A stretch of DNA of 64,000 bases from Ruditapes philippinarum (taxonomy: Eukaryota). Of the stretch, positions 1 through 28,970 are shown in pieces. The notes below the pieces were generated by a model. The model was not told the origin of the DNA, ran no database searches, and saw only the letters and a list, made by a program, of their open reading frames with translations. The DNA lies in contig NW_026857808.1 of the NCBI RefSeq assembly GCF_026571515.1, forward strand, positions 1 through 64,000, given 5' to 3'. Made by a program: the position numbers and the translations under genes. Every line of letters begins with the position of its first letter. Position 1 is the stretch's first letter.

Positions 1-906
1 ATTCACCATCAGCTGTGTAAGCCTTTGTAAATGAGTTTAGATTGAAGAAAAAAGAGTTTAAATCACAAACAAATAAAATACAATTGAAAATGGAAAATGT
101 CTCTGGTGCTTGTCTTAAGAGGGGAAAAAAAGAACTTGAATGATATAGTTAAAAAGTCAAAATATGCCAAAAAACTTGAGTATAATTCTATTGACTTTAG
201 ACTAATACTTAACAGAGAGATGCTGGAAGAATTATTCAAGCCATCAGTTGATAAAATCATTAGCAAATTGGTTGAAATACTAGACCAATGTGATGAAAAT
301 GAAATCAAAACAATCATTTTAGTTGGAGGGTACAGTGAATCTCCCTATGTAAGGGAGAAAATTCAGTCAACATTCAGTAACATGAGAGTTATCCTTGTAG
401 ATGATGCAAGACTTGCTGTGTTAAATGGGGCAGTGATGATGGGCTGGAAACCTAAAAACATCATACAACGTAGGTCCAGGTACACTTATGGATTTGAAGT
501 TGGTAAACCATTCAGAGAGGGAATAGATCCAGAAAAACTTAGGTATAATTATGATGGTGACATTTATTGTTCCAGGATATTTCGGAAGATGATAGAAAAA
601 GGTCAGATAGTGGAGTATGGCCAGACATTTATATATAAAGGGTATGGTACAGCCACTACAGCACAAAGAAAATGTATAGTGAGATATGTACATCTATATA
701 GATCTACCCGTGAAGATCCTCAATACTGTATAGAGGAAGAGGACTGTAGCTTAGTAGGAACAATAGAAATTATACCACCATCAGATGGATGGCCAGATGA
801 GTGGGATAGTGATCTACAACTTATTGTTGGTGAGACTGAGTTCACTGTGAAGTACTTTAATCTTGATACAGGAGAAGAATATGAAGCACAAATGGATTTT
901 CTGTAA
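1..906 (+). CDS. HSPA12: HSPA12-like (heat shock 70 kDa protein 12) copy 1, 3' part only; runs off the left edge, with 1-nt indels at ~14-30 and ~100 relative to the paralogs
   Basis: ORF 97-906 has ILVGGYSESP, AVLNGAVMMG and the shared C-terminus EYEAQMDFL. DNA 1-96 aligns to the paralogs only with indels (atggaaaatgTctctggtg vs atggaaaatgctctggtg), so the ATG at 97 is not the true start. Confidence 0.88.
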
Positions 907-1810
907 TTACAAACAGTAGGGACCTAAAGATAGAGATTGATAAACAATTATTGTCTACTACTTGTATTTCTTAAAATGGTCATTCCTTTCACAGGATAAA
1001 GTAGAAGTGATGACTGAGAAAACTTTCAAATGGCCATTTTAACATGACTTAATAGTGATGTTTAAATGGATACTGCAAAATATATTTATTTTATTCTCAC
1101 AGTGTTATATTTTACTTGTAAAGTGTTTTTGAAGAAAAGAACAATGCAATAAAGGATTTACTGTAAACATACCAGTGAGACAGGGTTATTGTTTTTTAAA
1201 GTATTGTATTGTAATATTTCAGTTATCTACCAAGAAACAAGACGTATAAGACTGATTAATGAAAAGAAGAGGGAAATGAGCAGATTTTTTTTCTTCCCAA
1301 ACTTTCCTCCCTATAGAATGAGATTGCCCTGAATAAGTAGATGGATTTTACCTTTTTATCAAATCTTCAAGAAAGAAAAAATATACCCAAAAAGTCACTG
1401 TCCCTGCAAGTTTCTGGCCGATGAGGAAAAATTTGATTAGTAAAATTAGAACCCAAAGTGCACACTTAAAGACAAACAGTTATTTATGTAAGGGCCAATT
1501 TTAACAATAGGGGCAAAGTTTGAACAACTATGGTAGAGGACCTTTAGATGATATTATATACCAAACAAGGGCAACAGTGTCGCAAAATATGCCCGTCACA
1601 AAAGCTTTTGTCAGAGATGTGGGCATTAAAGATATGAATATAGGAGATATGCTCTCAATATCTGGATATTTTATCATCTCTAGTGACCTTGACCTTGCAA
1701 ATATGAACCCACACCATAATGTCACTTGAGTTTGTATGGACAGATGGCAAAGGCAAAAACAATATGTCAACCAAAAATTTTGGGACAGACGTTATTGGCA
1801 AGTCTGAGAT

Positions 1811-2086
1811 TTTGTTTGTTTGTTTTGGGTTTTACGTCACATCGACACAGTATAGGTCATATCGCGACGTTCCAGCTTTACTGGTGGAGGAAGACCTCAG
1901 GTGCCCTTCCGTGCATTATTTCAGGCACGAATGGGTACCTGAGTAGAACCACCGACGTTCCGTAAGCTAGCTGGATAGCTTCCTCACATGAAAGAATCCA
2001 AAGTCCCTGTCGGGATTCAAACCCACAGAGGTGAGGGGCAAGTGGTTTAAAGTCAATGACCGTAACCACTCGGCCATGGACGGGGC
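1811..2086 (-). mobile_element. tRNA-derived SINE, family A (bivalve type), full length
   Basis: Minus strand has A-box TGGCCGAGTGG, B-box-like GGTTTGAATCC and a (CAAA)n tail. TSD GTCTGAGAT at 1802-1810 and 2087-2095. Near-identical copies at 49686 and 57343. Confidence 0.9.
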
Positions 2087-2380
2087 GTCTGAGATACATG
2101 GTCGAATTTAGCACAGACTTATATAGCAAATAATAAAAGTGTTCTAGAACAAAATACTTTTCACCACATAAATGTTCATATTAAATCACTTAGACCTTGA
2201 ATAGCATTTTTTTTGCAAAGAAATATTATATAAGAAAATCCTGATATCCAAATGATACATTTCTATTGTTCTGACTTATTGATAATACATTGTACATGTG
2301 TATATGATTTACTAAATTCTAACCACCTTTGTTTAAGCAACAGCAAAAGTAAGTTCATTTTATTTTGGATCTTCCTTCGT

Positions 2381-2515
2381 ATTCTCATTGCTGTATAGAG
2401 GAGGATTGACTCCTTGTTAGAAAGGAGAACAATTATACCACTATCAGATGGATGACAAGATATGTGGGGTTCTGATCTAAACAATACTGTTGGTGTGACT
2501 GAGTTCACTATGAAA
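2381..2515 (+). pseudogene. Orphan degenerate fragment of the HSPA12 C-terminal coding region
   Basis: Aligns to YCIEEEDCSLVG..PPSDGWPD.WD.DL..IVGETEFTVK codons (ctgtatagaggag, ccactatcagatggatg, tgttggtgtgactgagttcactatgaaa) with stops and indels. Confidence 0.85.
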
Positions 2516-3712
2516 CAAGAGCCATGTCAAAATGGCCATCCCCCGCCGAATGTGTTTGCTCATTTGAAGAATGTATATGTAGTAGAGCAGAATAATTCCA
2601 TTTTAAGAGGTCTTTTGGTAATGAAAACTGATGGCTATAGTGATTACAGATTTTAAACCTATGTGAATACTGATGGCTGAAAATAACAAAGGGCAATAAC
2701 TGAAAAATAATGCAGGGTAGGTTATCATCCTTGTGTGCTGCATCCCTCCTCAGTAAAATCTATCCACCTATTGAAGTTTCAAGTTGATACCTCAAATACT
2801 TTTGAGAAAAAAATTGAATTGAAAAATTAAGTTTGAAAAATAACAAAGGGCAATAACTCAAAAATTATAAAAGGTACAGTTATCATTCTTGTGCAGTGCA
2901 CACCTCCTGAGTGAGATCTATGCACCTGTGAAGTTTCATTTTTGATATCTCAAAGGCTTTTTTGAGTTTTATGCTCTGGACAAAAATTAATTTTGAAAAA
3001 TAACAAAGGGCAATAACTCAAAAATAATGCAGGGCAGAGTTATCATTCTTTAGCACTGCACTCCTCCTCAATGAGATCCATCCACCTATGAAGTTTCAAG
3101 ATGATACCTCAAATACTTTTTCAGATAAGCTCTGGACAAAAATAGCATGAAAAAAAAAACAAAGGGCAATAACTCAAAAAATTGTATAGGGAAGAGTTTA
3201 TCATTCTTGCGCACAACATTTCTCCTCAATAAGATCTATCCTTCTATGACATTTCATGTTGATATCTCAAACACTTTTTGAGTTATGCTCCACTCAGGTG
3301 AAAAATTAGGTATGAAAAATAACAAAGGGCAATAACTCAAAAATTATGAAAGGAAGAGTTATCATTCTTGTGCACTGCACACCTCCTGAGTGAGATCTAT
3401 GCACCTATGAAGTTTCATGTTAATATCTCATAGGCTTTTGGAGTTATGCTCTGGACAAAAATCAATTTTGAAAAATAACAAAGGGCAATAACTCAAAAAT
3501 CATGCAAGGTGGAGTTATCATTCTTGTGCACTGCACTCCTCCTCAATGAGGTCTATCCACCTATGAAGTTTCAAGTTGATAACTCAAATACTTTTAGAGA
3601 TATGCTCCGGACAAAAATTTCGGACGGAAGGACGGACGGACGGAAGGACGGACGGACGGTCGGACGGAGACTATTACTATATCCTCCGCCGAAAATTATC
3701 GGCGGGGGATAA
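2516..3712. mobile_element. HINE/pearl-like non-autonomous Helentron-type element with 6 x ~158-bp internal tandem repeats
   Basis: 5' CAAGAG start; subterminal IR ATCCCCCGCCGA (2538-2549) / TCGGCGGGGGAT (3699-3710). Monomer AACAAAGGGCAATAACT at ~2684, 2842, 3002, 3158, 3321 and 3477. (GGAC)n microsatellite ~3622-3668 and a 3' hairpin. The empty site is in the paralogous spacer at 18099/18100. Confidence 0.88.
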
Positions 3713-4386
3713 TAACAGAACAATGTTCTTTTGCTTTGTATCTCAAATTTTACAATAATTAGACTGTTTACAATGAAAATAAAACATAAATTTGAAAAAG
3801 TCATAGTGACACCTGCCATAATGAAAAGAGCTATGTTCTATGTAAACATATATTAACACATATTTTTTTGCATGGTATTATTTTTTCAATGATATTTAAA
3901 CATTTTTTTTTCATAAAAAAATTGTTTTATTGCATTTTAACCCAAAATAGGCCAAAAATATCCTTATCGCTATTACAAGCCATTCAGGTGAATTCCCCAA
4001 AGCTATGTACAGAAAGAAATGAAAATCGATGTTTAGCTAGGTTTTCAAGTTGGTGATTTGATTTAAATCAATGAAATTGTTTGTTAAAATCACTTCGGTT
4101 AAACTGATCAATTTGCTCTTGGAGAAAAAGATTTTGAGTGTCCCAGTGAGATAACAGCTATATACTTCATATCTTCTTTCCAAATTAATCTTTAAGCTGA
4201 CACAGTGGGTGAATGAAAATCAATATGTACATGCAAGGCACAAGTCTAAATTGAAGTGGTAACATTTTTGAGAAATAGGATAATGGTAAGTGAATATTAA
4301 TTAAAATCTTTATGAAATGTTACAAATAATAATAATAAATCAGCATTTTTCTAATCAATTATTCTTCACTCTTAACCTATCTTTGA

Positions 4387-4873
4387 AGAAGCTCCAATGT
4401 GGTCTAAAGCCTAAAATTTGAAATTTTAACATACATCAAGTGAAGCACTTAGAATTGAAGTATTTTCAAAGGATAATAGAGAATGTGTTGAGAATTAAAT
4501 TTTTTGTGTGTTTGTGTGATTATTAGTACGACTGTCAGTGTTTATTCTAGGATTTAAAAAAAACAGGGGGGGGGGGGGGTTGTCGAAAAGTAAGAATTCA
4601 TTACATTTGTTAATCTTTTGCCTTCTTTCTCTATGTAAAAATTTCCCTCTGCCTCTGAAAAATTAGTGGGGGAATTCTCAAAAATATGGGTGAATACCCC
4701 CATCGCCCCTCCAACAATAGACAAAATTAATATCAATTTTGAAAAGAGAGGGAATGATCTGAAAATATGAACAAAAGTTATTGTTCCAGACCTACATAAA
4801 CTTTAAATGATACACAAATTTCAGAAACAATATTTCTAGTCCAGTCTTGTCAAAAAACCTCAATCAAGTCCCT
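4387..4873. mobile_element. Old Kolobok-like MITE present in every HSPA12 spacer (also ~8566-8810, ~18820-19133, ~24893-25197)
   Basis: The best-preserved copy reads TTAA|AGGAGCTCCA ... TGGAGTCCCT|TTAA (24889-25201): AG..CT termini and a TTAA target. Confidence 0.55.
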
Positions 4874-5175
4874 TTAAAATCTATCAAAATTAATACTGTT
4901 GAAATATTTGCAATAGATTTTCATTATTACAGTATATTACAATAACAAAAGATGACAAAAAGATTTTTTCCTTTTCTTTTTAAGATTAATTCACTACTGA
5001 GATCTCCGATGAACACTTTAACAATGCTACAACAGTCATGAGCACAGTCCTACAACTAACAAATGAATCAACAAAACACTGTAAGACACAAGACAGAGTT
5101 TCAAAATAAACCCAGATACAAAAATCAACTGGAAAATTAGTTAAGATAAGCTGGTAATGTAAAACTGTAACAAGT

Positions 5176-7125
5176 ATGGGAGCAGCCATACAACCAACAG
5201 CAAGACAACAAACTAAACAAAGTAATGAAAGCAGACAAACAGAATCTCAGGATTCTCTACATCAGGATAATGTGGACAAGCCACTTGTACAACCAACAGC
5301 TAGACGAAAAACTGAACAGAGTAATGAAAGCAGACAAACAGAATCTCAGGATTCTCTACATGAGGATGAAGTGGACAAGCCACTTGTTGTAAAACCAACA
5401 GCAAGACGAAAAACTGAAGATAGCAATGAAAGCAGACAGAAGCTTCTTGTTGTTGTAGCCATAGATTTTGGAACAGTCCATTCTGGGTTTGCATATTCCT
5501 TTAAGGGAAATGAAAACAACATTAAGTCAGCAGAACATGGAGGAATACTGCAGGAAGATAGAGTACCTACAATACTGTTATTAAATCCAGATAAAACATT
5601 TCATTCATTTGGATACAAAGCACAGATTGATTTTCATGAGCTTTCTGCATGTGACAGATCCAAATTTTACTTCTTTGAAAACTTTAAAATGAAAATATAT
5701 CAAGAAAGTAAAATTGAAAGAGAAATGGGAGTAAAAGATATTTCTGGTAAACCACTTGAAGCTATGATAGTTTTTTCAATAGCAATAAATCATCTAAAAG
5801 ATGAAGCATCAAAGATAGTTTTAGATTCAAAACTTGAATTAAAGGACACTGACATTCATTGGATGATAACAATTCCAGCAATATCATCTGACTCTGCACG
5901 TCAGTTTATGAGAGAATCTTCAACAAAAGCAGGAATTCCAGAGACACATCTTCGACTTGTTCTAGAGTCTGAAGCAGCAGCTTTTTACAGTACACCACGA
6001 ATAATGACAGAAGAAATACCATGTGGGTTTATGTATGTACTTGCTGATTTAGGTGGAGGGACAACAGACATATGTGCTCATAAAATAATAGATGGTGGCA
6101 AAATACAAGAAATATACCGAACAACAGGAGAAGCCTCTGGTGGCAGTGATGTTGATGAATGTTTTATTAACATGATGGAAACTTTAATAGGAAAAAAGGT
6201 TTGGGATGAATTCTCAACTACTCACCCATCAGCTTGTGTGAGCCTTGTTAATGAGTTTAGATTGAAGAAAAAAGAGTTTAAATCACAAACAAATAATATA
6301 CAATTGAAAATGGAAAATGCTCTGGTGCATGTATTAACAGGGGAAAAAAAGAACTTGAATGATATAGTTAAAAAGTCAAAATATGTCAGAAAACTTGAGT
6401 ATAATTCTATGGACGCTAGACTTACAATCAACAGAGAGATGCTGGAAGAATTATTCAAGCCATCAGTTGATAAAATCATTAGCAAATTGGTTGAAATACT
6501 AGACCAATGTGATGAAAATGAAATCAAAACAATCATTTTAGTAGAAGGATACAGTGAATCTCCCTATGTAAGGGAGAGAATTCAGTCATCATTCTGTAAC
6601 ATGAGAGTTATCCTTGTAGATGATGCTAGACTTGCTGTGTTAAATGGGGCAGTGATGATGGGCTGGAAACCTAAAAACATCATACAACGTAGGTCCAGGT
6701 ACACTTATGGATTTTATATTGCAGAACCATTCAGAGAGGGAATACATCCAGAACAACTTAGGGTTAATCATGATAGTTACATTTATTGTGGCATGATATT
6801 TGAGAAGATGATAGAAAAAGGTCAGATAGTGGAGTATGGACAGACATTTATATCTGGAGGGTATGATAATGCCACTACAGTAGAAGGAAAACGTGAAGAG
6901 AGACATGTACGTCTATATAGATCTACCCGTGAAGATCCTCAATACTGTATAGAGGAGGAGGACTGTAGCTTAGTAGGAAGAGTAAAACTTTTACCACCAT
7001 CAGATGGATGGCCAGATGATTGGTATAGCCAGGTACACCTTATTGTTGGTGAAACTGAGTTCACTGTTAAGTATTTTAATCTTAAAACAGGACAAGAATA
7101 TGAAGCACAAATGGATTTTCTGTAA
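5176..7125 (+). CDS. HSPA12: HSPA12-like copy 2, intact single-exon CDS, 649 aa
   Basis: HSP70/HSPA12 NBD motifs VVAIDFGT, FENFKMKIY, WMITIPA, RQFMRE, LESEAAA, ADLGGGTTD and ILVEGYSES. No EEVD or KDEL terminus. N-terminal ~33-aa repeats. Confidence 0.93.
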   Translation: MGAAIQPTARQQTKQSNESRQTESQDSLHQDNVDKPLVQPTARRKTEQSNESRQTESQDSLHEDEVDKPLVVKPTARRKTEDSNESRQKLLVVVAIDFGTVHSGFAYSFKGNENNIKSAEHGGILQEDRVPTILLLNPDKTFHSFGYKAQIDFHELSACDRSKFYFFENFKMKIYQESKIEREMGVKDISGKPLEAMIVFSIAINHLKDEASKIVLDSKLELKDTDIHWMITIPAISSDSARQFMRESSTKAGIPETHLRLVLESEAAAFYSTPRIMTEEIPCGFMYVLADLGGGTTDICAHKIIDGGKIQEIYRTTGEASGGSDVDECFINMMETLIGKKVWDEFSTTHPSACVSLVNEFRLKKKEFKSQTNNIQLKMENALVHVLTGEKKNLNDIVKKSKYVRKLEYNSMDARLTINREMLEELFKPSVDKIISKLVEILDQCDENEIKTIILVEGYSESPYVRERIQSSFCNMRVILVDDARLAVLNGAVMMGWKPKNIIQRRSRYTYGFYIAEPFREGIHPEQLRVNHDSYIYCGMIFEKMIEKGQIVEYGQTFISGGYDNATTVEGKREERHVRLYRSTREDPQYCIEEEDCSLVGRVKLLPPSDGWPDDWYSQVHLIVGETEFTVKYFNLKTGQEYEAQMDFL

Positions 7126-7642
7126 TTACAAACAGTAGGGACCTAAAGATCAAGATTGATAAACAATTGTTGTCTACTACTTTTATTTCCTAAAATGGTC
7201 ATTCTTTTCATAGGAAAAAAAGTAGAAGTGATGAAGTAACTGAGAAAACTTTGAAATGGCCATTTTAACATGACTTGATAGTGATGTTCAAAAAGGATAC
7301 TGCAAAACATATTTATTTTATTCTCACAAGTACAGTGTTATATTTATTCTTTGTAATGTGTTAATGGAGGTAAAGAACAATACAATAAAGGATTTACAGT
7401 AGAGTAGACATACATCATACGGAGTTATTGTTTCCTTAAAAACTTCATTGTGATACTTTTCAGTTATATACCAAGAAACAAGGCGTATAAGACTGGTTAA
7501 TGAAAAGAAGAGGGAAATGAGCAGATTTTTTTCTTCACAATCTTTCCTCTCTACAGAATGGGATTGCCTTGAATAAGTAAAGAAAAGGAATTATAATTGA
7601 TTTTACCATTTTATAATGTCTTCAAGAAAGAAATAATGTACT

Positions 7643-9122: not shown

Positions 9123-10923
9123 ATGGGAGCAACCATACAACCAACAGTTAGACAAGAAACTGAACAGAGTACTGAAAGCAGACAAAAGGAATCTCAGGAT
9201 TCTCTACATGAGGATGAAGTGGACAAGCCTCTTGTTGTAGTAGCCATAGATTTTGGAACAGTCCATTCAGGGTTTGCATATTCCTTTAAGGGAAATGAAG
9301 ACAACATAAAGTCAGCAGATCATGGAGGAATGCTGAAGGAAGATAGAGTACCTACAGTATTGTTATTAAATCCAGACAAAACATTCCATTCATTTGGATA
9401 CAAAGCACAGACTGATTTTCATGACCTTTCTCAATGTGACAGATCCAAATTTTACTACTTTGAAAACTTTAAAATGAAAATATATCAAGAAAGTAAAATT
9501 GTAAGAGAAATGGTAGTTAAAGATATTTCTGGTAAACCACTTGAAGCTATGAACATTTTTTCAATAGCAATAAAACATCTAAAAGATGAAGCATCAAAGA
9601 TAGTTTTTGTATCAATACTTGGTCTGAAAGAAACTGACAAATTCAATGGATGATCACAATTCCAGCAATTTCATTCTGACTCAGCACGTCAGTTTCATGA
9701 GAGAAGCTTCGACAAAAGCAGGAATTCCAGAAACACATTCTTCGACTTGTTCTTGAGTCTGAGGCAGCAGCTTTATACAGTACACCACGAATAATGACAG
9801 AAGCAATACCATTGTGGGTTTATGTACATGTCTTGCTGATTTAGGTGGAGGGACAACAGACATATGTGCTCATAAAATAATAGATGGTGGCAAAATACAA
9901 GAAAATATACCGAACAACAGGAGAGAAGCCTCTGGTGGCAGTGATGTTGATGATTTGTTTTTATTAACATGATGGAAAACTTTAGTAGGAAAAAAGGTAT
10001 GGGTGAATTCTCAACTACCTACCCATCAGCGTGTGTAAGCCTTGTTAATGAATTTAGACTGAAGAAGAGAGAGTTTAAATCACAAACAAATAAAATACAA
10101 TTGAAAATGGAAAATGCTCTGGTGCATGTCATAAGAGGGAAAAAAAAGAACTTGAATGATATAGTTAAAAAGTCAAAACCATGTAAGAAAACTTGAGTAT
10201 AATTCTATGGAGGCTAGACTTACAATCAACAGAGAGATGCTGGAAGAATTATTCAAGCCATCAGTTGATAAAATCATTAGCAAGTTGGTTGAAGTACTAG
10301 ACCAATGTGATGAAAATGAAATGAAAACAATCATTTTAGTTGGAGGATACAGTGAATCTCCCTATGTAAGGGAGAGAATTCAGTCAACATTCAGTAACAT
10401 GAGAGTTATCCTTGTAGATGATGCTAGACTGGCGGTGTTAAATGGGGCAGTGATAATGGGCTGGAAACCTAAAAACATCATACAACGTAGGTCCAGGTAC
10501 ACTTATGGATTTGTGATTAGACAACCATTCAGAGTCGGAGAAGATCCAAAACAACTTAGGGTTAATTGTGATGGGGTCATTTATTGTGACATGATATTTA
10601 AGAAAATGATAGAAAAAGGTCAGATAGTGGAGTATGGACAGACATTTATATTTCAAGGGTATGATTCAGCCACTTCAGCAGGACAAAAACGCAAAGTGAA
10701 AAATGTACATCTATATAGATCTACCCAAAAAGATCCTCATTACTGTAGAGAGGAGGAGGACTGTAGCTTAGTAGGAACAGTAAAAACTAAACCACCATCA
10801 GATGGATGGCCAGATATGTGGGACTTTGATCTACAACTTATTGTTGGTGAAACTGAGTTCACTGTGAAGTGTTTAAATCTTAAAACAGGACAAGAATATG
10901 AAGCACAAATGGATTTTCTGTAA
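9123..10923 (+). pseudogene. HSPA12: HSPA12-like copy 3, broken by ~12 small indels in 9638-10190 (pseudogene or assembly error)
   Basis: ORFs 9123-9653, 9969-10196 and 10207-10923 are consecutive pieces of one protein. Indels are mostly +1/+2 homopolymer extensions relative to copies 2, 4 and 5. Confidence 0.9.
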
Positions 10924-13270: not shown

Positions 13271-14347
13271 CTAGAAATGTGTCATCATGCCATGGATGCC
13301 CCCGCATGCAGCCAAAATTTCAGATGGTACAATAATTATTTTTTTCATTTTAAGTTCAAAAGCCCTTAAAACTTTTCAATGTTAACACAAACCATTTTCA
13401 TACAATGTTCAAGGCACTGAAATTATTCAGTCTTAACCTTTTAAAAATAGCATATTGCATATTTGTAGCCAAAATAATGGCTAAAAGCATAAGTGCTGAA
13501 ACTGAAAGTTCAAAATTTTTCCAACATTCAGGAAAGATAAGTTTGTCTAAAATCATTGAACCACGACCAAATTCAAACTTAAACTGCTTATTCCTAAGAT
13601 GTATCTATATTATTTTCAAAGTGAAAGGGACATAACTCTGCCAAAAAATCATCAAACCATGACCAAATTCCAACTTGACCTGCCCATTCCTTTGACATAT
13701 CCATATGTCAAATTTAAGTTGAATATGTAACACTGTTGGGTAGATAATGAACAGAAACTGTAAATTTCATATTATTTTCAAAGTGAAAGGGGCATAACTC
13801 TGCCAAAAATCATTGAACCATGACCAAATTTGAACTTGACCTGCGCATTCCTTTGACGCATCCATATGTCAAGTTTGAGTTGAATGTGTTGTACCTTTGG
13901 GGAGATAATGAACGGAAACTGAAAATTTCATATTATTTTCAAAGTAAAAGGGGCATAACTCTGCCAAAAATCATCCAACCATGACCAAATTCGAACTTGA
14001 CCTGTATTTTCTCATGACATATCCATATGTCAAGTTTGAGTTGAATGTGTTGTACCGTTGGGGAGATAATGAACGGAAACTGAAATTTCATATTATTTTC
14101 AAAGTAAAAGGGGCATAACTCTGCCAAAATTCATCGAACCATGACCAAATTCGAATTTGACCTGTATTTTCTCATGACATATCCATATGTCAAATTTGAG
14201 TTGAATGTGTGCAACCGTTCTTAAGATAATGAACGGAAACTGATGATGACGGAATGACAGAATGACGGAAGGGCGTAAGGACGGAAGGACGGAATGACGT
14301 AACAGGGTAACACTATATGCCCTGGCCATTACATGGCGGGGGCATAA
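13271..14347. mobile_element. HINE/pearl-like element (second family) with ~4-5 x ~160-bp repeats, inserted in an (AAT)n tract of the mariner
   Basis: Subterminal IR ATGCCCCCGC (~13296) / GCGGGGGCAT (~14336). Monomer CATAACTCTGCCAAAA at ~13631, 13793, 13954 and 14114. GACGGAAT/GACGGAAG microsatellite and a 3' hairpin. Confidence 0.85.
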
Positions 14348-14917: not shown

Positions 14918-16516
14918 CAAGAGGGCCATGATGGCCCTGAGGTCGCTCACCTGTATATAGGCCCCCCAACCCCCCCCCCCCCCCCCCACCTTGCAGGGCC
15001 AATTTAACCCAAGGGCTTTTATTTGCACAAACTTGGTAGACACCCATAAGAAGATGTTTCATGCTAAACATCTCAGCTTGAGCTCATTGGGCTTTTTAAA
15101 AGAAGATTTTTTTTAAAGTTTTTACTATAAACATATAGTTTAAAACAATGACACCCCTGGGGCCGGGCCAGTTTTGACCCCAAGGCTTTTATTTGAACAA
15201 ACTTTGTAGACACTTACTAGAAGATGTTTCATGCTTAATATCTAAACTCTAGCTATTTGGGTTTTTTCAAAGAAGATTTTATGTTTTTGCTATACACATA
15301 TAAAGAAAATCAATGACCCCCAGGGCGGGGCCAATTTTGACCCCAGGTCTTTTATTTGAACAAACTTTGTAGACACTCACTAAAAGATGTTTCATGCTTA
15401 ATATCTTAACTCTAGCTATTTGGGTTTTTTCAAAGAAGATTTTTTAAGTTTTTGCTATACACATATAAGGAAAATCAATGACCCCCGGGGCGGTGCTAAT
15501 TTTGACCCCAGGGCTTTTATTTGAACAAACTTGGTAGACACCTATTAGAACATGTTTGATGCTAAATATCTTAGCCATAGCTCTTTGAGTTCTTTAAAAG
15601 AAGATTTTTTTAAGTTTTTACTATATGCATATAGGGAAAATCAATGACCCCCCGGGGCGGGGCCAATTTTGACCCCAGGGCTTTTATTTGAACAAACTTG
15701 GTAGACACTTATTAGAACATGTTTCATGCTAAATATCTTAGCTCTAACTCTTTTGGTTCTTTAAAAGAAGATTTTTTAAGGTTTTTACTATATGCATATA
15801 GGGAAAAATCAATGACCCCCCGGGGCTGGGCCAATTTTGACCCCAGGGCTTTTATTTGAACAAACTTGGTAGACACCCATTAGAACATGTTTGATGCTCA
15901 ATATCTTAGCCATAGCTCTTTGAGTTCTTTAAAAGAAGATTTTTTAAGTTTTTACTATATGCATATAGGGAAAATCAATGACCCCCGGGGCGGGGCAAAT
16001 TTTGACCCCAGGGCTTTTATTTGAACAAACTTGGTAGACACCCATTAGAACATGTTTCATGCTAAATATCTTAGCTCTAGCTCTTTGGGTTCTTTAAAAG
16101 AAGATTTTTTAAGTTTTTACAATATGCATATAGGGAAAATCAATGACCCCCTGGGGCGGGGCCAATTTTGACCCCAGGGCTTTTATTTGAACAAACTTGG
16201 TAGACACTCACTAGAAGATGTTTCATGCCAAATATCTAAGCTCTAGCTCTTATGGTTTTTTAAAAGAAGATATTTAAAGTTTTTTCTTTCGGTTGCCATG
16301 GCAACCAGAGTTCTGCATGGAATTAAATTCTTTGAACAATTTTTAAAGGTGACCACCAAAGGAACATTCCTGTGTTTGGATGAAATTGGCTTAGTGGTTT
16401 ATGAGGAGATGTCATTTAAAGTAAAAGTTTACGGACGGACGACGGACGGACGGACGGACGCCAGACGAAAAGCGATCACAAAAGCTCACCCTGTCACTTT
16501 GTGACAGGTGAGCTAA
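14918..16516. mobile_element. HINE/pearl-like element (third family) with 8 x ~166-bp satellite-like monomers
   Basis: 5' CAAGAGGGCCATGATGGCCCT palindrome and subterminal IR GCTCACCTG / CAGGTGAGC. Eight monomers GGGCCAATTTTGACCCCAGGGCTTTTATTTGAACAAACTTGG. (GGAC)n at 16431-16460 and 3' hairpin CTGTCACtttGTGACAG. Confidence 0.9.
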
Positions 16517-17735: not shown

Positions 17736-17941
17736 ACATAAATTTATATAGAAGATAATAAAAGTGTTCTAGAACAAAATACTTTTCATCATATAAATGT
17801 TCATATTAGAATATCCTGATATCCAAATGATACCTTTCTATTGTTCTTACTTATTAACAGTGTGTTGTATATGATTTAACTTTGCTTAAGCAACAGCAAA
17901 GTAAGCCTATCTTACCCCCAGTATTTTGGATCATCCCCCAT

Positions 17942-18099
17942 ATATAGATCTACCCTAGTGGATTCTCATTGCCGTATAGAGGAGGAGGATTGACTCCTTG
18001 TTAGGAAGGAGAACAATTATACTACCATCAGATGGATGGCAAGATATGTGGGATTCTGATCTACACCATACTGTTGGTGTGACTGAGTTTACTATGAAA
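17942..18099 (+). pseudogene. Second orphan fragment of the HSPA12 C-terminal coding region
   Basis: atatagatctaccc..gattctcattgccgtatagaggaggaggat..ccatcagatggatggcaagatatgtgggattctgatctacac..gactgagtttactatgaaa is a degenerate YRST..DPHYCIEEED..PSDGW.DMWDSDLH..TEFT.K. It is paralogous to 2381-2515. Confidence 0.87.
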
Positions 18100-19759
18100 T
18101 AACAAAACAATGTTCCTTTTGCTATGTATCTCAAATTTTACAAAAATTAGACTGTTTACAATGAAAATAATACATAAATTTTAAAAAAGTCATAGTGACA
18201 CCTGCCATAGTGCAAAGAGGTATTTTCCATGCAAACTTATGTATTAACATATATATTTTTACATGGAATTATTTTAACAATGACATTTAAACATTTTTAC
18301 CCCCCCCCCCCAAAAAAAAATGTTTTATTTCATTTTAATCCAAAAAAGGCCAAAAACATACTTGTCACTATTACAAGCCATTTAGGTGAATTTCCCAGAG
18401 CTATGTACAGAAAGTAATGGAAGTCAATGTTTAGCTAGGTTATCAAATTCGTGAATTATATCAATGATTTTGTTTGCTAAAATCACTTCTGATACATGAT
18501 ACAACTTATTCATTTTATGCGTACAGTATACTCTTGAGAAAAAAGATATAATGTTTAAATGAGATTAGAGCTATAGAATTCATATCTATATACTACTAAT
18601 TTTTAAATTTATCCTTAATCTGAAACATTGGATGAAAGAAAATCAACATGTAAAAACATGGCACAAGTCTAAATTAAAGTTGTAACATTTTTGTGAAATA
18701 GGATAGCAGGAAATAATGGTAAGTGAATATTAATTAAACTATTTATGAAATGTTAAAAATAGTAATAGTAAATCAGTATTTTTCTAATCAATTATTTTTC
18801 ACTCTTGACCTATCTTTAAAGGAGCTCCAATGAGGTCTAAAGACTAAAATATAAAATTTAGAATTCTTACATACATCAAGTGAAGCACTTTAAAATTGAA
18901 ACATCATCAAAGGATAATAAAGAATGTGTTGAGAATTAGATTTTGTGTGTGTGCGATTATTAGCACGACCGTAACATTTAAAATACAAAATTGATAATAA
19001 TTTTGAGAAAAGAGATAATGATCTGAAAATATGAACAAAAGTTATTGGTCCAGACCTACATAAAATGATACACAAATTTCAGAAACAATATTTCTAGCCC
19101 AGTCTTGTCAAAAAAAACCTCATTCGAGTCCCTTTCCCTGCTTCATGTATATGAATTGCATAATTTTTTTTTTGTATTTGCAATCAGCATAAAGTTGATA
19201 TGACAGTATTGATATCATGAGGATGATAAAAATTAGCAAATAATTATATAAATATCACACAAAAAATTGGCATGTGCTTTTTCTATATATATGCCCCATC
19301 CCCACCTCATGAATACATTTTTGAAGATTGTAATAATTACTTTAAGCTGACAAATCTAAATCAATCTTTCACAAATATTTTGGCACATTTAATTAGTTGT
19401 TCAAAATGAGGGAATGTAACTGGCAAAATTATAAGATTAAATATGTACAGTATAATTATTTTCATATAAAACCTTTTATTTGTCTATATATCGATCAAAT
19501 TTAAATTAGGGCAATGATTTTCACAATTATCAATACATCTTTTCCTTTTTTGATAAAGGTATAGGTATACAAGGCCAATACAATAAAGAATATATTGAAT
19601 GATCATATTTCAACTTCTCAATAACAAAAATCTCCAAGGGCGCCATATAGGTGTATCTTATAAGAAACAGAATAGAAGAAAAAAATGCAAAAACAAAACT
19701 GATTTCGGTTAGAAACTTTAATGTTCTGATCACTTGGAAATATTTAAATAGAAATGAAG

Positions 19760-19920: not shown

Positions 19921-21987
19921 ATGGGAGCAACCATACAACCTACAGTTAGACAAGAAACTGAACAGAGTAATGAAAGCAGAAAGAAGAAATCTCAGGATTC
20001 TCTACATGAGGATAAAGTGGACAAGCCTCTTGTTGTACAACCAACAGCAAGACGAAAAACTAAACTTGTTGTACAACCAACAGCAAGACGAAAAACTAAA
20101 CTTGTTGTACAACCAACAGCAAAACGAAAAACTAAACTTGTTGTACAACCAACAGCAAGACAACAACCTGGACAGAGTAATGAAAGCAGAAAAAAGAAAT
20201 CTCAGGATTTTCAGCTAGAGGATAAAGTGAACAAGACTCTTGTCAAACAACCAACAGTTAGAAAAGTTGAACAAAATGAACAAAGTAATAAAAGCAGAAA
20301 CAAGCCTCTTGTTGTAGTAGCCATAGATTTCGGAACAGTCCATTCCGGGTTTGCATATTCCTTTAAGGGAAATGAAGACAACATAAAGTCAGCAGAACAT
20401 GGAGGAATGCTGCAGGAAGATAGAGTACCTACAATATTGTTATTAAAACCAGACAAAACATTCAATTCATTTGGATACAATGCACAGACTGATTTTCATG
20501 AGCTTTCTGAATGTGACAGATCAACATTTTACTACTTTGAAAACTTTAAAATGAAAATATATCAAGAAAGTAAAATTGAAAGAGAAATGGTAGTAAAAGA
20601 TATTTCTGGTAAACCACTTGAAGCTATGACAGTGTTTTCAATAGCAATAAAACATCTTAAACATGAAGCATCAAAGATAGTTTTAGATTCAATACTTGGA
20701 CTGAAAGAAACTGACATTCAATGGATGATAACAATTCCAGCAATTTCATCTGACTCTGCACGTCAGTTCATGAGAGAAGCTTCGACAAAAGCAGGAATCC
20801 CAGAGACACATCTTCGACTTGTTCTTGAGCCTGAAGCAGCAGCTTTATACAGTACACCACGAATAATGACAGAAGCAATACCATGCGGGTTTATGTACAT
20901 ACTTGCTGATTTAGGTGGAGGGACAACAGACATATGTGCTCATAAAATAATAGATGGTGGCAAAATACAAGAAATATTCCGAACAACAGGAGAAACCTCT
21001 GGTGGCAGTGATGTTGATGATTGTTTTATTAACATGATGAAAACTTTAATAGGAGAAAAGGTTTGGAGTGAATTCTCAACTACCCACCCATCAGCTTGTG
21101 TAAGCCTTGTTAATGAGTTTAGATTGAAGAAAAAAGAGTTAAAATCACAAACAAATAATATACAATTGAGAATGGAAAATGCTCTGGTGCATGTCATAGG
21201 AGGGAAAAAAATGAACTTGAATGATATAGTTAAAAAGTCAAAATATGTCAGAAAACTTGAGTATAATTCTATGGACGCTAGACTTACAATCAACAGAGAG
21301 ATGCTGGAAGACTTATTCAAGCCATCAGTTGATAAAATCATTAGCAAATTGGTTGATGTACTAAAACAATGTGATGAAAATGAAATGAGAACAATCATTT
21401 TAGTTGGAGGATATAGTGAATCTCCTTATGTAAGGGAGAGAATTCAGTCAACATTCAGTAAAATGAGAGTTATCCTTGTAGATGATGCTAGACTGGCTGT
21501 GTTAAATGGGGCAGTGATGATGGGCTGGAAACCGAAAAACATCATACAACGTAGGTCCAGGTACACTTATGGATTTGCAGTTTATAAACCATTCAGAAAG
21601 GGAATAGATCCAGAACAACTTAGGATTTATTATGATGGGGACATTTATTGTGACATGATATTTCAGAAGATGATAGAAAAAGGTCAGATAGTGGAGTATG
21701 GACAGACATTTATATCTGAACAGTATGAAACAGCCACTACAGTAGAAGAAAAATATAAAGTGAGATATGTAGATCTATATAGATCTACCCAAAAAGATCC
21801 TCAATACTGTATAGAGGAGGAAGACTGTAGCTTAGTAGGAACAATAAGAATTTTACCACCATCAGATGGATGGCCAGATATGTGGGATCATGATCTACAC
21901 CTTATTGTTGGTGAAACTGAGTTCACTGTTAAGTATTTTAATCTTAATACAGGACAGGAATATGAAGCACAAATGGATTTTCTGTAA
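19921..21987 (+). CDS. HSPA12: HSPA12-like copy 4, intact single-exon CDS, 688 aa
   Basis: All NBD motifs present (AIDFGT, LEPEAAA, DLGGGTTD, LVGGYSESP). N-terminal 36-bp tandem repeat. Confidence 0.94.
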   Translation: MGATIQPTVRQETEQSNESRKKKSQDSLHEDKVDKPLVVQPTARRKTKLVVQPTARRKTKLVVQPTAKRKTKLVVQPTARQQPGQSNESRKKKSQDFQLEDKVNKTLVKQPTVRKVEQNEQSNKSRNKPLVVVAIDFGTVHSGFAYSFKGNEDNIKSAEHGGMLQEDRVPTILLLKPDKTFNSFGYNAQTDFHELSECDRSTFYYFENFKMKIYQESKIEREMVVKDISGKPLEAMTVFSIAIKHLKHEASKIVLDSILGLKETDIQWMITIPAISSDSARQFMREASTKAGIPETHLRLVLEPEAAALYSTPRIMTEAIPCGFMYILADLGGGTTDICAHKIIDGGKIQEIFRTTGETSGGSDVDDCFINMMKTLIGEKVWSEFSTTHPSACVSLVNEFRLKKKELKSQTNNIQLRMENALVHVIGGKKMNLNDIVKKSKYVRKLEYNSMDARLTINREMLEDLFKPSVDKIISKLVDVLKQCDENEMRTIILVGGYSESPYVRERIQSTFSKMRVILVDDARLAVLNGAVMMGWKPKNIIQRRSRYTYGFAVYKPFRKGIDPEQLRIYYDGDIYCDMIFQKMIEKGQIVEYGQTFISEQYETATTVEEKYKVRYVDLYRSTQKDPQYCIEEEDCSLVGTIRILPPSDGWPDMWDHDLHLIVGETEFTVKYFNLNTGQEYEAQMDFL
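20029..20163 (+). repeat. Coding minisatellite, 36 bp x ~3.7 (LVVQPTARRKTK)
   Basis: cttgttgtacaaccaacagcaagacgaaaaactaaa starts at 20029, 20065, 20101 and 20137. Confidence 0.95.
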
Positions 21988-23725: not shown

Positions 23726-25937
23726 GAACTATCGCTGAATGCGATTCATACCCCGACCAATGTCCTTGACAGAAGAAGACTTTGAAAGGTGGTTAAGGGA
23801 ATAACTTAAGTGGCACAAATACATATACATAAAAAGAAAATATCTCTGGTGGAAAAAAAACCAAATTGTACAGGTAATAGTTTTACTATATATTGTCAAA
23901 TCATGTTCAAAACAGTTACAAATAACCTATCATTTTCCCAATGTAGTAAAACAAACAAAAGTAGTAGTGAAGTTAAGAAAATAGCATAATTATGTCAAAA
24001 TGTAATTAAGAGTGGAAAAACTTTGCATACTCAGCTTACTTGTGACCCTTCATATATTATATAGTTTCGAGTGAATATCTGTTCTAGTTTCAGAAACATT
24101 TAAGTATTAATGGTTATATCAGAACATTTTCTAAGCCTAAAAGGGGCATAACTTGTGTAATAATTCAATGGAAATGTAGAATTTTCGTCATCTGAGCTTG
24201 CTTGTAACCATTCATATAAATTTTAAGTTTCAAGTAAATATTTGTTCTGGTTTAATAAATTATTGTTCATATTTGTCATCATTATTTTCTTGAAAAATAT
24301 GAGCTTTATTATTGAACATGCTATCGTGCTTAAAGTTCTGCATAATGGGGTGCTTGGGAGCTTATTATAAGGAAGGGGTATATTTCAGAATCAATACAAA
24401 TTTATTTACCAAAATGTATGCAACTTTAAATTAAAGATATTTCTTTTAGTGTAGACAAAAGTAATAAAGCATAGAATATTATCAATAAGATTTAGATTGT
24501 TCCATCATAATTTAATAACAAAACAAATAGTATTTTTGGCAATCAAGACAAAGGTTTTTTACAAATTATGAACACCTTTACATTTTGATGCCAAGATTAA
24601 ATTCATCTTATTTTAAATCTGAAACAATAAGACAGAGCTATAGAATTCATATCTATAGGGCTTTTCAACTTAATCTTTAAGCTAAAACAGTGGATGAAGG
24701 TAAATCAATATGTTAATGTATGGCACAAGTCTAAATTGAAATTTAACATTTTTGTGAAATAGGATAAGGAGTAATGGTAAGTGAAATTAATTAAAATCTT
24801 TTTTAACAGAAATATTTATGAAATGTTAAAATCTATAATAATAAATCAGCATTTTTCTAATTATTTATTCTTCACTTTTGACCTATCATTAAAGGAGCTC
24901 CAATCTGGCCTAAAGCCTAAAATATAAAATTTTAAATTTTTACATACATCAAGTGAAGCACTTGAAACTGAAACATTTGCAAAGGATAATAGCGAATATG
25001 CTGATAATTAAGCTAAAAAATAATTGTGTCTGATTATTAGCATGATTGTAATGCATAAAATAAATATTAATTTTAGGAAAAGAGGGACTCAGATGTGAAA
25101 CTATGCACACAAGTTATTGGTCGGGAACCTACATCAAAACTGCTGAAAAAAAATATTCTGGCCTGAGTTTTGTAAAAAAAACATCGCTGGAGTCCCTTTA
25201 ATATCTATCAAAATTAATACTCTATCAAAATTTCAGGTAAAAAATTAATTAATTACTGAAATATTGGCCATAAAATGTCAATATCACAGTAAATTACAAT
25301 AAACAACAAGAAGCCCTGTATATAGTTAAATGGCACTTAAAAAAATTGTAATACATAGATTCTACGAATGAACTACATAATTATTTGTAGCAGACAGAAA
25401 ACCTTAAATACTAACCCCCAAATAAATACAAATTATTATACATGAGCTCAATTTTCTAACCTTAAAAAAAAACCCTGCTATATAAATTGCATTTTTTTTT
25501 TGTATTTGCAATCAGCATAAAGTTGATATGACAGTATCAATATATATATATATAAATATCCTAGAAATATATAAATAATGAATATCACACAAAAATCGGC
25601 ATGTGCTTTTTTTAAGTATATCCCCCCTCCCTCCCGGACTCATGAATAAATTTTTGAAGATTGTAATAATTAATTACTTTAAGATGACAAATCCTAATTA
25701 GGCAAAATTATTAAATTATTAGATTTAATACAGTTTATTATCCTATAAAACTTTTTTCTTCTTTCTAAAAATCAATTAAATTTAAGTTAAGGTTATGAAT
25801 ATCACAATTTTCAATACATCTATTCATTTTTTGATAAAGGTATATGTATACAAGGCCAATACAATAAAGAATATATTGAATGATCATATTTCAAATTCTC
25901 AATAACAAAAATCTCCAAGGGCGCCATATAGGTGTAT

Positions 25938-26936
25938 GGACATAATCCCCTTCAGACAAAATCCCCTTCCCATACCCGGACAAAATCCCCTTCATGGGTG
26001 GACATAATCCCCTTCATGTTTTTGCAAGGCCGGACAAAATCCCCTAACCTACCAGGACAAAACCCCCTTCGGCCTTGTTTCATAGTTTTCTGATGTATTA
26101 TTATGGTCCATAAAATTGATGAATAATGTATTTTTATGCTCAATAAAAATTGATGAATTATAATGAACTTTTGTTTTTTTTATTTATAATTATGTATCAA
26201 GTTAACCTTTATAATTATATAAGCTTGATAAGACATATTTTTATTATTTGTTCCGATCAATTATCAACCAAATTATCATTAAAAACGATTTAACAGGTTT
26301 ATCAGTGTTCATTATAATTGTGGTAAATTATCAACTGCATAACAAATATATAGAGGATATTGAATGAGTGTAAGTTCAATACTGAATTTATTGCACGAGT
26401 TGAATAAAATTATATTATGCGAGCCTCTGGCGAGCATAATATTATTTTATTCAACGAGTGCAATAAATTCAGTAATGAAGTTACACGAATTTAATATTCT
26501 ATTTATCACATACCCAAAATAAAGACCGTTTAAGGTAAAATAAGAGTCGTTTTTCATTGACGCGCCTATAGTATAACGCTAACATTTAGCGCGTCTTTAC
26601 ACAATGTTTGAATAACGCTAATGACGTCACGTCAAAATATATGCACGGCCGTGCAATACCATATTTACGGAGTCGCAAAATCGGCACGGGTGTGTGATAA
26701 ATTTGATTAAGCAATTTCTTTAACTGCTTTAAATTGATTAGTATGAAAAACATTTTAATTAGTTTAACAGTGTTCATTTTAATTGATTAAAATGATGAGG
26801 GGGATTTTGTTGCAATTTTATTGAGGGGATTTTGTCCACTTCAAAATTTCACACATGAAGGGAATTATGTCCACCCATGGAGGGGATTATGTCCAGATAA
26901 ACAAAAATACATGAAGGGGATTTTTGTCTGACATTC
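25938..26936. mobile_element. Foldback/MULE-like MITE with an 8-bp TSD and repeat-built TIRs
   Basis: TSD AGGTGTAT (25930-25937, 26937-26944); empty site catatAGGTGTATctta at ~19644-19660. G..C termini. Six GACA(A/T)AATCCCC-type repeats on the left and five inverted copies on the right. Confidence 0.87.
26350..26702. mobile_element. Small nested element with a ~72-bp hairpin and an internal complement of its end junction (Crypton/DIRS-like architecture, unassigned)
   Basis: Arms 26354-26425 and 26429-26500 pair around the loop TCT. TTTATCACATACCC (26502-26515) is the inverted complement of the right end GGGTGTGTGATAAA (26688-26701). Confidence 0.7.
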
Positions 26937-27189
26937 AGGTGTATCTAAATAAAAGAAACAAAATTGAAGAAAAAATACAAACACAAAACTGAGTTCTGTT
27001 ATCACTTGAAAATATTTAAATAGAAATGAAGGTAGGTAGAAAACTTAGTCAAATTCAATTTTCTATTTGTATATAAACGATATCAATAACAGTAGCAGTA
27101 CAATATATATAGAGTAAAAAAAAACCTTTTTATTTTTAATTTCAGATTCATTAACTAGGATAAGTTATTAAATTAAAACTGTAACAAGT

Positions 27190-28970
27190 ATGGGAGCAAC
27201 CATACAACCTACAGTTAGACAAGAAACTGAACAGAGTAATGAAAGGAGACAGAAAGAATCTCAGGATTCTCTACATGAAGATAAAGTGGACAAGCCTCTT
27301 GTTGTAGTAGCCATAGATTTTGGAACAGTTCATTCCGGGTTTGCATATTCCTTTAAGGGAAATGAAGACAAAATAAAATCAGCAGAACATGGAGGAATGA
27401 TGCAGGAAGATAGAGTACCTACAGTATTGTTATTAAAACCAGACAAAACATTCCATTCATTTGGATACAAAGCACAGACTGAATTTTACAAGCTTTCTCA
27501 ATGTGACAGATCCAAATTTTACTACTTTGAAAACTTTAAAATGAAAATATATCATGAAAGTAAAATTGAAAGAAAAATGGTAGTTAAAGATATTTCTGGT
27601 AAACCACTTGAAGCTATGACAGTGTTTTCAATAGCAATAAAACATCTAAAAGATGAAGCATCAAAGATAGTTTGTGAATCAATACTTGAACTGAAAAAAA
27701 CTGACATTCAATGGATGATAACAATTCCAGCAATATCATCTGACTCAGCACGTCAGTTCATGAGAGAAGCTTCAACAAATGCAGGAATTCCAGAGACACA
27801 TCTTCGACTTGTTCTTGAGCCTGAAGCAGCAGCTTTATACAGTACACCACGAATAATGACAGAAGAAATACCGTGTGGATTTATGTACATACTTGCTGAT
27901 TTAGGTGGAGGGACAACAGACATATGTGCTCATAAAATAATAGATGGTAGGAAAATACAAGAAATATACCGAACAACAGGAGAAACCTCTGGTGGCAGTG
28001 ATGTTGATGATTGTTTTATTAACATGATGAAAACTTTAATAGGAAAAAAGGTTTGGAGTGAATTCTCAACTACCTTCCCATCAGCATGTGTAAGCCTTGT
28101 TAATGAGTTTAGACTGAAGAAGAAAGAGTTTAAATCAGAAACAAATGCTATACAACTGAAAATGGAAAATGCTCTGGTGCATTTCATAAGAGGGAAAAAA
28201 GGAACTTGAATGATATAGTAAATAAGTCGAAATATGCCAGAAAACTCGAGTATCATTCAATTGAAGCTAGACTTTTACTTAACAGAGAGATGCTGGAAGA
28301 ATTATTTAAGCCATCAGTTGATAAAATCATTAGCAAGTTGGTTGAAATACTAAATAAATGTGATGAAAATGAAATCAAAACAATCATTTTAGTTGGAGGA
28401 TACAGTGAATCTCCCTATGTAAGGGAGAGAATTCAATCACAGTTCAGAAATATGAGAGTTATCCTTGTAGATGATGCTAGACTGGCTGTGTTAAATGGGG
28501 CAGTGATGATGGGCTGGAAACCTAAAAATATCATACAACGTAAGTCCAGGTACTCTTATGGATTTGCAAATAAAAGACAATTCAGAGTGGGAATAGATCC
28601 AATTCAACTTATGATTATTTGTGATGGGGTCTTATGTTGTGACATGATATATTGGAAGATGATTGAAAAAGGTCAGATAGTGGAGTATGGACAGACATTT
28701 AAATATGAAGGGTATGATATAACCACTACAGTAGAAAAATGTATTGAGAGATATGTATTTCTATTTAGATCTACCCGTGAAGATCCTCATTACTGTATAG
28801 AGGAGTGCTGTAGCGAAGTAGGAACAATAAAAATTCTACCACCATCAGGTGGATGGCCAGATAGGTGGAAATTTCATCTACACCTTATTGTTGGTGAAAC
28901 TGAGTTCACTGTAAAGTATTTGAATCTTAATACAGGACAGGAATATGAAGCACAAATGGATTTTCTGTAA
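27190..28970 (+). pseudogene. HSPA12: HSPA12-like copy 5 with a single -1 frameshift in an A tract at ~28195-28202 (pseudogene or assembly error)
   Basis: ORFs 27190-28209 and 28206-28970 join into a full protein if one base is added to GGGAAAAAAGGAAC (copy 3: GGGAAAAAAAAGAAC). Confidence 0.92.

Follow-up and report, generated by a model that had tools for sequence, protein, structure and literature searches.

Diversifying selection on putative substrate-cleft elements of lidless HSPA12-like proteins encoded by a tandem array in the Manila clam

Why does the Manila clam, Ruditapes philippinarum, carry a tandem array of HSPA12-like genes whose copies are closely alike along most of the C-terminal domain and differ sharply in a few short patches of it? 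The question is raised by the first 64 kb of contig C6295 in the 1.41-Gb assembly, which is the whole stretch of DNA analyzed here and is called the window below. Bivalves are well known for a massive expansion of HSPA12, the Hsp70/HSPA12 expansion of R. philippinarum itself has been reported (PMC6831834), and a 2026 review describes the function of HSPA12 as unknown and the reason for its expansion as unclear (PMC13580251). BLAST with the longest copy revealed five HSPA12-like copies (c1-c5) in the window, all in tandem on the + strand with about 91% DNA identity. Copies c2 and c4 are intact, with one open reading frame (ORF) each and without need for a spliced gene model; c1, c3 and c5 are broken as assembled. 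An initial annotation, made from the letters alone, had described five hypervariable patches (HV1-HV5) and an additional R/E/K/Q/W site (c4 residue 582) in the C-terminal part. The patch strings and this site were reproduced exactly in the five copies, and the coordinates given for the patches fit, HV1 of c4 beginning at 21577. In this study, the patches were found to be under positive selection, and they were mapped to putative counterparts of the elements around the peptide cleft of canonical Hsp70.

The window genes are assigned to the HSPA12 (Hsp70-12) subfamily by their nearest named matches and their lidless layout. Sister paralogs on other contigs are 100% identical to proteins named 'heat shock 70 kDa protein 12A-like [Ruditapes philippinarum]', and the named matches, from 100% down to about 32% identity, are bivalve HSPA12A/B-like proteins apart from a few 'hypothetical protein' entries. 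The Pfam family HSP70 (PF00012) was found on the nucleotide-binding domain (NBD) with E values of 2.7e-18 for c4 and 3.6e-13 for c2; this match covers the ATPase domain only and was obtained with a local Pfam copy lacking PF27033, and the precomputed Pfam annotation of relatives lists both PF00012 and PF27033. The ATPase part had been described as conserved, and its catalytic motifs are indeed invariant in the 93 family members compared: D-x-G-T, K, E and D-x-G-G-G-T-x-D, that is, residues D7, G9, T10, K81, E174, D201, G203, G205, T206 and D208 in model numbering. A Foldseek search with the structural model described below matched DnaK, BiP and Hsc70 with E values as low as 1e-26. These motifs and the predicted fold point to an actin-like ATPase domain in which the phosphate-1, phosphate-2 and adenosine motifs are present.

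The ORFs end in ...EYEAQMDFL straight after the last predicted beta strand, with no alpha-helical lid and no EEVD, whereas the canonical Hsp70s of the same clam end in EEVD/EEMD. A search of the C-terminal domain profile against PDB sequences gave no significant match, and fold comparison was therefore used instead. An AlphaFold2 model of c4 residues 130-688, built from a 93-sequence alignment, reached a predicted local distance difference test (pLDDT) score of 91.5 and a predicted template modeling (pTM) score of 0.87. A second model, of residues 535-688 from a 58-sequence alignment of same-genome paralogs, is all-beta with a pLDDT of 93.3; block means across the patches are mostly at least 93. 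With the domain alone, 49 of the best 50 of at least 500 Foldseek matches were Hsp70 substrate-binding domains (SBDs), the other being a flagellar doublet-microtubule chain. In VIA-align, run against all representatives, the mortalin SBD came first among the named Hsp70s (Z 10.3, root-mean-square deviation (rmsd) 2.1 Å over 109 residues). The DnaK SBD followed with Z 8.1 (model 14-154 on DnaK 397-504), BiP, Ssz1 and Sse1 were also matched, and the best unrelated fold scored Z 4.6. The whole model is closest to docked, ATP-type Hsp70/Hsp110 structures (TMq 0.60-0.62, rmsd 6.5-7 Å), and undocked states fit worse. Because of these models and fold-search matches, the window genes are, as predicted structurally, lidless Hsp70 relatives with a true SBD beta subdomain (SBD-beta). 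The variable region had been placed at the position of SBD-beta in the gene; the models go beyond mere position and indicate structural homology. This result agrees with a description of HSPA12 as lidless (PMC13580251) and contradicts the statement, citing Brocchieri 2008, that HSPA12 has no substrate-binding domain (PMC10939072).

Substitution rates were obtained from Nei-Gojobori counts over all pairs of a close-paralog set of 13 sequences, made up of c1-c5 and eight intact genes from six further contigs. Three more distant copies were added as outgroups. An array on contig C314 was considered as an allelic haplotig and rejected as such; because its flanks are only 80-91% identical, it was treated as a paralogous array. 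In the 45 patch codons, dS was 0.13-0.19 and dN 0.41-0.43, giving a dN/dS ratio (omega) of 2.3-3.2 with a bootstrap confidence interval (CI) of 1.56-3.46. The corresponding values were dS 0.12-0.13, dN 0.06-0.07 and omega 0.5 for the 197 other C-terminal codons, and dS 0.16, dN 0.065 and omega 0.40 for the ATPase domain. As raw proportions, nonsynonymous differences (pN) of 0.32 stood against synonymous differences (pS) of 0.12-0.16 in the patches, and pN of 0.06 against pS of 0.11-0.12 in the other C-terminal codons. Within the patches, the counts gave a somewhat higher pS in HV1 and HV5. A sliding window showed little change of pS along the gene and peaks of pN at residues 550-580, 600-620 and 640-660. 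Patch dN/dS exceeded 1 in 75 of 78 paralog pairs, and at least two base changes were found in 39% of the differing patch codons (16% in the scaffold). Since dS is flat along the gene, faster mutation does not account for the patches, hypermutation is rejected, and the patches are under positive, diversifying selection. The diversification proposed by the initial annotation thus held in the comparison with silent sites, patch dS not being raised in proportion to dN. Its description of the scaffold as almost identical even at silent sites is accurate for the three segments it quoted (0-3.6% nucleotide difference) and too strong for the scaffold overall (dS about 0.12; NBD 0.16).

The patches had been picked for being variable, and site models were therefore fitted, using an in-house Goldman-Yang implementation with F3x4 codon frequencies; the topology came from IQ-TREE and was held fixed, as were the relative branch lengths, while the scale was left free. 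For the 242 C-terminal codons in 16 sequences, M2a was far better than M1a (likelihood ratio test (LRT) statistic 97.3, p 7e-22), with 14% of sites at omega 3.3. Seventeen sites had a posterior above 0.9 (553, 555, 556, 571, 582, 607, 610, 612-616, 618, 645, 654, 656 and 657), and every one of them lies inside the 46 codons, out of 242, that had been marked beforehand (hypergeometric 3e-14). With the 13 close sequences only, the LRT statistic was 114, with 20% of sites at omega 3.7 and 28 sites above 0.9; among these, 457, 482, 511, 560, 566, 578 and 624 lie outside the patches. A full-length run with intact copies only, in which the patch signal persists, gave an LRT statistic of 89.4 with 4.2% of sites at omega 4.3; of its 12 selected sites, 10 fall among the 154 codons of the C-terminal domain and 2 among the 405 ATPase codons (Fisher 8e-5). 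For cross-validation, codons with at least three residue states among the five window copies were scored in the eight non-window paralogs, where omega was 2.05 (CI 1.2-3.65), compared with 0.58 for the remaining codons.

Each copy has a unique patch set, and no patch is common to two paralogs. Patch distances among paralogs correlate neither with scaffold distances nor with one another, and the pair closest in sequence still shows 11-32% difference in a patch, against 4-8% in the scaffold. The C-terminal domain shows almost no indels among the copies. A small sample of near-allelic comparisons is available: JGI protein P0012 and its counterpart on C664 are 98.3% identical, with six differences, one of them inside HV3 and one next to it, and P0007 and its counterpart on C8921 are 96.8% identical, with 12 differences within the gene proper, including residues 556, 560 and 583.

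In DnaK, structures of the SBD with bound peptide show that the peptide channel consists of loops L1,2 and L3,4 with strands beta1-beta4, and that L5,6 buttresses it. The patches were placed on this fold by the strands of the model, the ranges of VIA-align, and an hhalign comparison of the domain profile with the SBDs of the clam's own canonical Hsp70s. HV2 appears as a small hairpin within an enlargement of L1,2 by about 17 residues, and HV3 runs from the end of beta3 through an enlarged L3,4, which contains a short helix, into the first part of beta4. The hhalign comparison likewise sets HV3 on beta3/L3,4/beta4 and has HV4 and HV5 flanking L5,6, with PPSDGWPD aligned to PPAPRGVPQ; this L5,6 equivalent is itself conserved. 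Mapped by homology and secondary structure, the patches appear to correspond to the elements that build or buttress the peptide cleft of DnaK. The conserved segments include KMIEKGQIVEYGQ in beta2-L2,3, GET in L6,7, and beta7-turn-beta8. In Hsp70, L2,3, L6,7 and beta7-beta8 lie toward the NBD-docking side. The side facing the switch may thus be fixed and the side facing the ligand variable. In terms of DnaK residue numbers, the register may be off by one or two residues.

Homologous positions were also scored in three other HSPA12 arrays of the genome (C12707, C4098 and C7920; loci L071-L085), which are about 30% identical to the window clade. Patch and scaffold omega were 0.12 and 0.14 in C12707, 0.60 and 0.24 in C4098, and 0.99 and 0.27 in C7920. 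Because patch omega spans 0.12-0.99 in these arrays, the constraint on the cleft loops depends on the clade: some clades keep the loops under constraint, others have released or diversified them, and the window clade is the extreme. The hypervariability is specific to the window clade, and the other clades compared are weakly or not diversified. The low patch omega of C12707 indicates that the patch positions are functionally important. These three arrays carry introns, and their last exon encodes about 310-370 aa.

We propose that the array records adaptive diversification of the ligand-binding cleft in a lidless, ATP-switched Hsp70 relative, within a tandem array that evolves by birth and death, and we give this reading as a whole a probability of roughly 0.68. 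Each copy would join a charged repeat tail of variable length, a conserved Hsp70 ATPase and a C-terminal beta-sandwich homologous to the Hsp70 SBD. Selection would repeatedly have replaced residues at the end of beta1 and in the enlarged L1,2, in beta3, L3,4 and beta4, and at the strand ends flanking L5,6, while the rest of the sandwich, including L2,3, L6,7 and beta7-beta8, which face the NBD in Hsp70, would have been kept. Each paralog would then carry its own combination of cleft residues. We infer that the conserved ATPase could serve as a nucleotide switch controlling an open cleft whose specificity varies by copy, and that the array may be a repertoire of binders, encoded in the germline and regulated by ATP, for different polypeptide ligands. 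Selection was probably exerted by fast-changing or diverse ligands. Selection on a putative binding surface, placed by homology mapping, combined with a conserved scaffold and a birth-and-death array, is the pattern of a diversifying receptor-like family. The leading ligand candidates may be non-self proteins of pathogens, parasites or toxic algae, although we hold an immune role to be only a tentative suggestion.

Several observations weigh against this proposal. The DnaK residue register comes from an hhalign match of 6.6% probability (E 0.0016), and hhalign and VIA-align disagree in the N-terminal part as to whether HV1 or HV2 is the counterpart of L1,2. The assembly also shows c1, c3 and c5 as broken, a point not raised in the initial annotation. 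The tree of close copies is poorly resolved (bootstrap 8-71), and 51% of neighboring informative site pairs are incompatible by the four-gamete test, independent of distance (10 intact paralogs, c4 130-688); these failures come either from parallel hits in a near-star radiation or from short-tract conversion at saturation. Recombination may also inflate the LRTs, the topology and the relative branch lengths having been fixed in the site models. The pairwise counts, which need no tree, agree in direction with the site models.

The broken copies, the two relics that lie between copies, the fairly high scaffold omega of about 0.5, and the poor conservation of the patch columns across the wider family would all suit relaxed constraint, in which redundant or dying copies vary in their least constrained loops. 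Relaxation, however, pushes omega to 1 and not above it; the patch CI lies wholly above 1, M2a is far better than M1a, the signal holds with intact copies only, and the same positions are strongly conserved in C12707. Relaxed constraint was rejected on these grounds and is considered very improbable. Gene conversion offers a subtler account: scaffolds would be homogenized, the patches would be old cassettes that escape or are shuffled, and the replacement excess would reflect a difference in age. Such a mosaic would fit the star-like tree, the very high site incompatibility, the lack of correlation between patch and scaffold distances, and the somewhat higher pS in HV1 and HV5, and one shared tract, at c2/c4 codons 431-461, is significant above the global threshold. 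Older patches would nevertheless raise dS together with dN, and dN is raised about six-fold while dS moves only from 0.12-0.13 to 0.13-0.19. Few tracts pass the permutation test, and the pairwise homoplasy index (PHI) falls short of significance (p 0.08). Patches could escape conversion only if selection kept them different, so this account, which we regard as improbable, is nearer to a refinement of adaptive diversification than to an alternative. A local hypermutation or an assembly or alignment artefact in the patches is barely credible. It would explain why multi-nucleotide differences are packed into short stretches, and c3 does show small indels in a suspicious cluster in another part of the gene; yet silent sites in the patches are not raised in proportion, the C-terminal domain has almost no indels, variation in the same patches recurs among eight paralogs located on six further contigs, and the models are confident across the patches.

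A different rival accepts the selection and disputes its agent. The paralogs may be targeting co-chaperones or Hsp110-like partners for different endogenous client sets or stresses, with no arms race. The fold and the docked model resemble Hsp110 and ATP-state Hsp70, the bivalve HSPA12 expansion has been tied to abiotic stress with many copies responding to heat or metals (PMC11268181, PMC10939072, PMC6831834), and a partnership with canonical Hsp70s has been suggested (PMC13580251). The sustained omega well above 1 and the excess of multi-hit codons point instead to moving targets and not to a fixed client set, and the uniqueness of every patch also weighs against this rival. No perfect trimeric heat-shock element (nGAAnnTTCnnGAAn) was found in the 64-kb window, in a search of perfect matches only for which about one is expected by chance, whereas the canonical intronless hsp70 loci L090 and L091 have one and three such elements, respectively, just upstream of the ORF. 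The missing element argues weakly against classical heat induction, which imperfect elements or a distant promoter could still provide. Diversification for endogenous clients without an arms race is considered unlikely. Adaptive diversification of the cleft is preferred, and under it one may go further and imagine bivalve HSPA12 arrays as an Hsp70-based, germline-diversified system of intracellular recognition. In such a system, an ATP switch would control a lidless cleft whose loops are in an arms race with proteins of pathogens, parasites or toxic algae, and presence/absence variation and pseudogene turnover would give individual repertoires. This extension is doubtful.

How do these genes compare with known systems? 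The literature on bivalve HSPA12 describes the same family in tandem arrays with frequent pseudogenes or presence/absence variation, and some of its members have been located in hemizygous parts of bivalve genomes (bioRxiv 10.1101/2020.09.15.298695). In the Pacific oyster (Magallana gigas), a whole-gene Ka/Ks above 1 was reported for 14 tandem HSPA12 pairs (PMC11268181). That literature relies on whole-gene ratios and expression, whereas here selection is placed on sites, the domain is identified as SBD-beta, and the putative cleft loops are mapped; no report placing HSPA12 selection in SBD cleft loops was found in the literature searched. Canonical Hsp70/DnaK proteins share the ATPase fold and catalytic motifs, the modeled beta-sandwich superposes on SBD-beta of DnaK, mortalin and BiP (Z 8-10), and the L5,6-like loop and beta7-turn-beta8 are recognizable at the sequence level. 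The window genes differ from them in having no lid or EEVD and in carrying about 17 extra residues in L1,2 and about 5 in L3,4. The cleft residues of canonical Hsp70 are among its most conserved; in the window clade their putative counterparts are hypervariable, with sites aligned to L1,2, L3,4, beta4 and beta6 at omega of about 3-4. HSPA12 is also present here as dozens of paralogs, with no perfect heat-shock element in the window. Vertebrate HSPA12A/B, HSPA14/Ssz1 and Hsp110/Sse1 likewise combine an Hsp70 NBD with a modified SBD, and the docked, ATP-state arrangement of Sse1 resembles the model (TMq 0.62 to 2qxl). These proteins are, however, encoded by single or few copies under purifying selection, unlike the window clade with omega of 3-4 at cleft sites. 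Family-wide Ka/Ks for Hsp70-12 is about 0.14 (PMC12692333).

By analogy from general knowledge, the window genes may also be compared with immune proteins of other folds. TRIM5alpha joins a conserved effector module to a PRYSPRY beta-sandwich with selected loops (v1-v4), much as the window genes would join a conserved switch to a sandwich with selected loops, and bivalve C1qDC proteins and snail FREPs show a similar lineage-specific tandem expansion with pseudogenes. PRYSPRY differs in having no homology to the domain, its VIA-align Z of 3.2-3.4 being below the noise level.

The features of the window are collected in Table 1. The frame of c1 is interrupted by a TGA near 18-20 and by 1 bp inserted near 97-100; c5 lacks 1 bp near 28200 and, without loss of frame, two codons of its C-terminal domain. 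In c3, about 12 small indels lie within about 540 bp (9639-10180), and the rest of the copy is well conserved; ten are slippage-like insertions that duplicate adjacent bases (A->AAA, T->TT, GA->GAGA; 13 bp in total), accompanied by one 1-bp deletion and one 1-bp insertion. This cluster represents either real slippage decay or a poorly polished patch of the assembly. The layout of c2 comprises N-terminal repeats, an Hsp70 NBD and the lidless SBD-beta-like domain (6661-7122). The N-terminus of all copies reads MGA/MRA...IQPT, and the extension ahead of the ATPase domain consists of charged tandem repeats with units of about 33-36 aa, such as QPTARRKTEQSNESRKKKSQDSLHEDKVDKPLVV, with a 12-aa sub-repeat in c4. 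Repeat number varies widely among paralogs, including loci L004, L006 and L008, and the resulting proteins are between 577 and about 780 aa long. The HSPA12 copies are interspersed with and followed by satellite-like intergenic tandem arrays, whose periods are about 156-165 bp and 66/132 bp (2680-3619, 13607-14243, 14996-16284 and 34334-35567). A serine-rich ORF of 506 aa at 37292-38812 on the - strand, without a Pfam match, probably belongs, as an exon, to an unrelated gene that follows the array.

Table 1. Features of the 64-kb window. Residues are numbered on c4, in which residue r begins at 19921+3(r-1); patch coordinates of c2 and c3 equal those of c4 minus 14862 and minus 11064, respectively.
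Feature	Position	Strand	Remarks
c1, 3' part of HSPA12-like gene	1..906	+	truncated at contig start
c1 SBD-beta-like domain	442-903	+	HV1 begins at 496
HSPA12 3'-end relic	2381..2509	+	78% identical to c4 nt 1877-2007
c2, intact HSPA12-like gene, 649 aa	5176..7125	+	single ORF
c2 N-terminal coding tandem repeat	5189-5438	+	99-bp unit x2.5
c3, HSPA12-like copy, frame broken	9123..10923	+	C-terminal domain 10459-10920 in frame
HSPA12 3'-end relic	17941..18101	+	79.5% identical to c4 nt 1856-2015
c4, intact HSPA12-like gene, 688 aa	19921..21987	+	single ORF
c4 N-terminal coding tandem repeat	20029..20161	+	36-bp unit, 3.7 copies
c4 NBD, residues 130-534	20308..21522	+	predicted Hsp70/actin-like ATPase fold; phosphate-binding motifs kept; omega 0.40
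c4 C-terminal domain, residues 535-688	21523..21984	+	all-beta in the model; predicted structural homologue of Hsp70 SBD-beta
c4 HV1, residues 553-556	21577..21588	+	putative end of beta1/start of enlarged L1,2; 553, 555, 556 with posterior of at least 0.93 for omega>1
c4 HV2, residues 568-574, with variable sites 578 and 582 in beta2	21622..21666	+	571, 582 with posterior 1.0
c4 HV3, residues 597-618	21709..21774	+	607, 610, 612-616, 618 selected
c4 HV4, residues 641-645	21841..21855	+	putative C-terminal end of beta5, ahead of L5,6 equivalent; 645 selected
c4 HV5, residues 654-660	21880..21900	+	putative start of beta6, past L5,6 equivalent; 654, 656, 657 selected
c5, HSPA12-like copy	27190..28970	+	C-terminal domain 28512-28967; HV1 begins at 28566

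In sum, this study adds two points to what is known of HSPA12: its C-terminal domain is, as modeled, a lidless SBD-beta, and in one young clade selection appears to have repeatedly rewritten the counterparts of the Hsp70 cleft while the ATPase and the NBD-facing side stayed fixed. The vague account of stress tolerance may thereby be replaced by a testable proposal, namely that the copies differ in what they bind. The residues to swap are named, c2 and c4 are intact neighbors to compare, and the C12707 array supplies a negative-control clade. If the ligands are non-self, the window genes would represent a new class of innate recognition molecule, an immune receptor on a chaperone chassis; if they are endogenous, the array would offer a rare example of a chaperone whose specificity has radiated adaptively.

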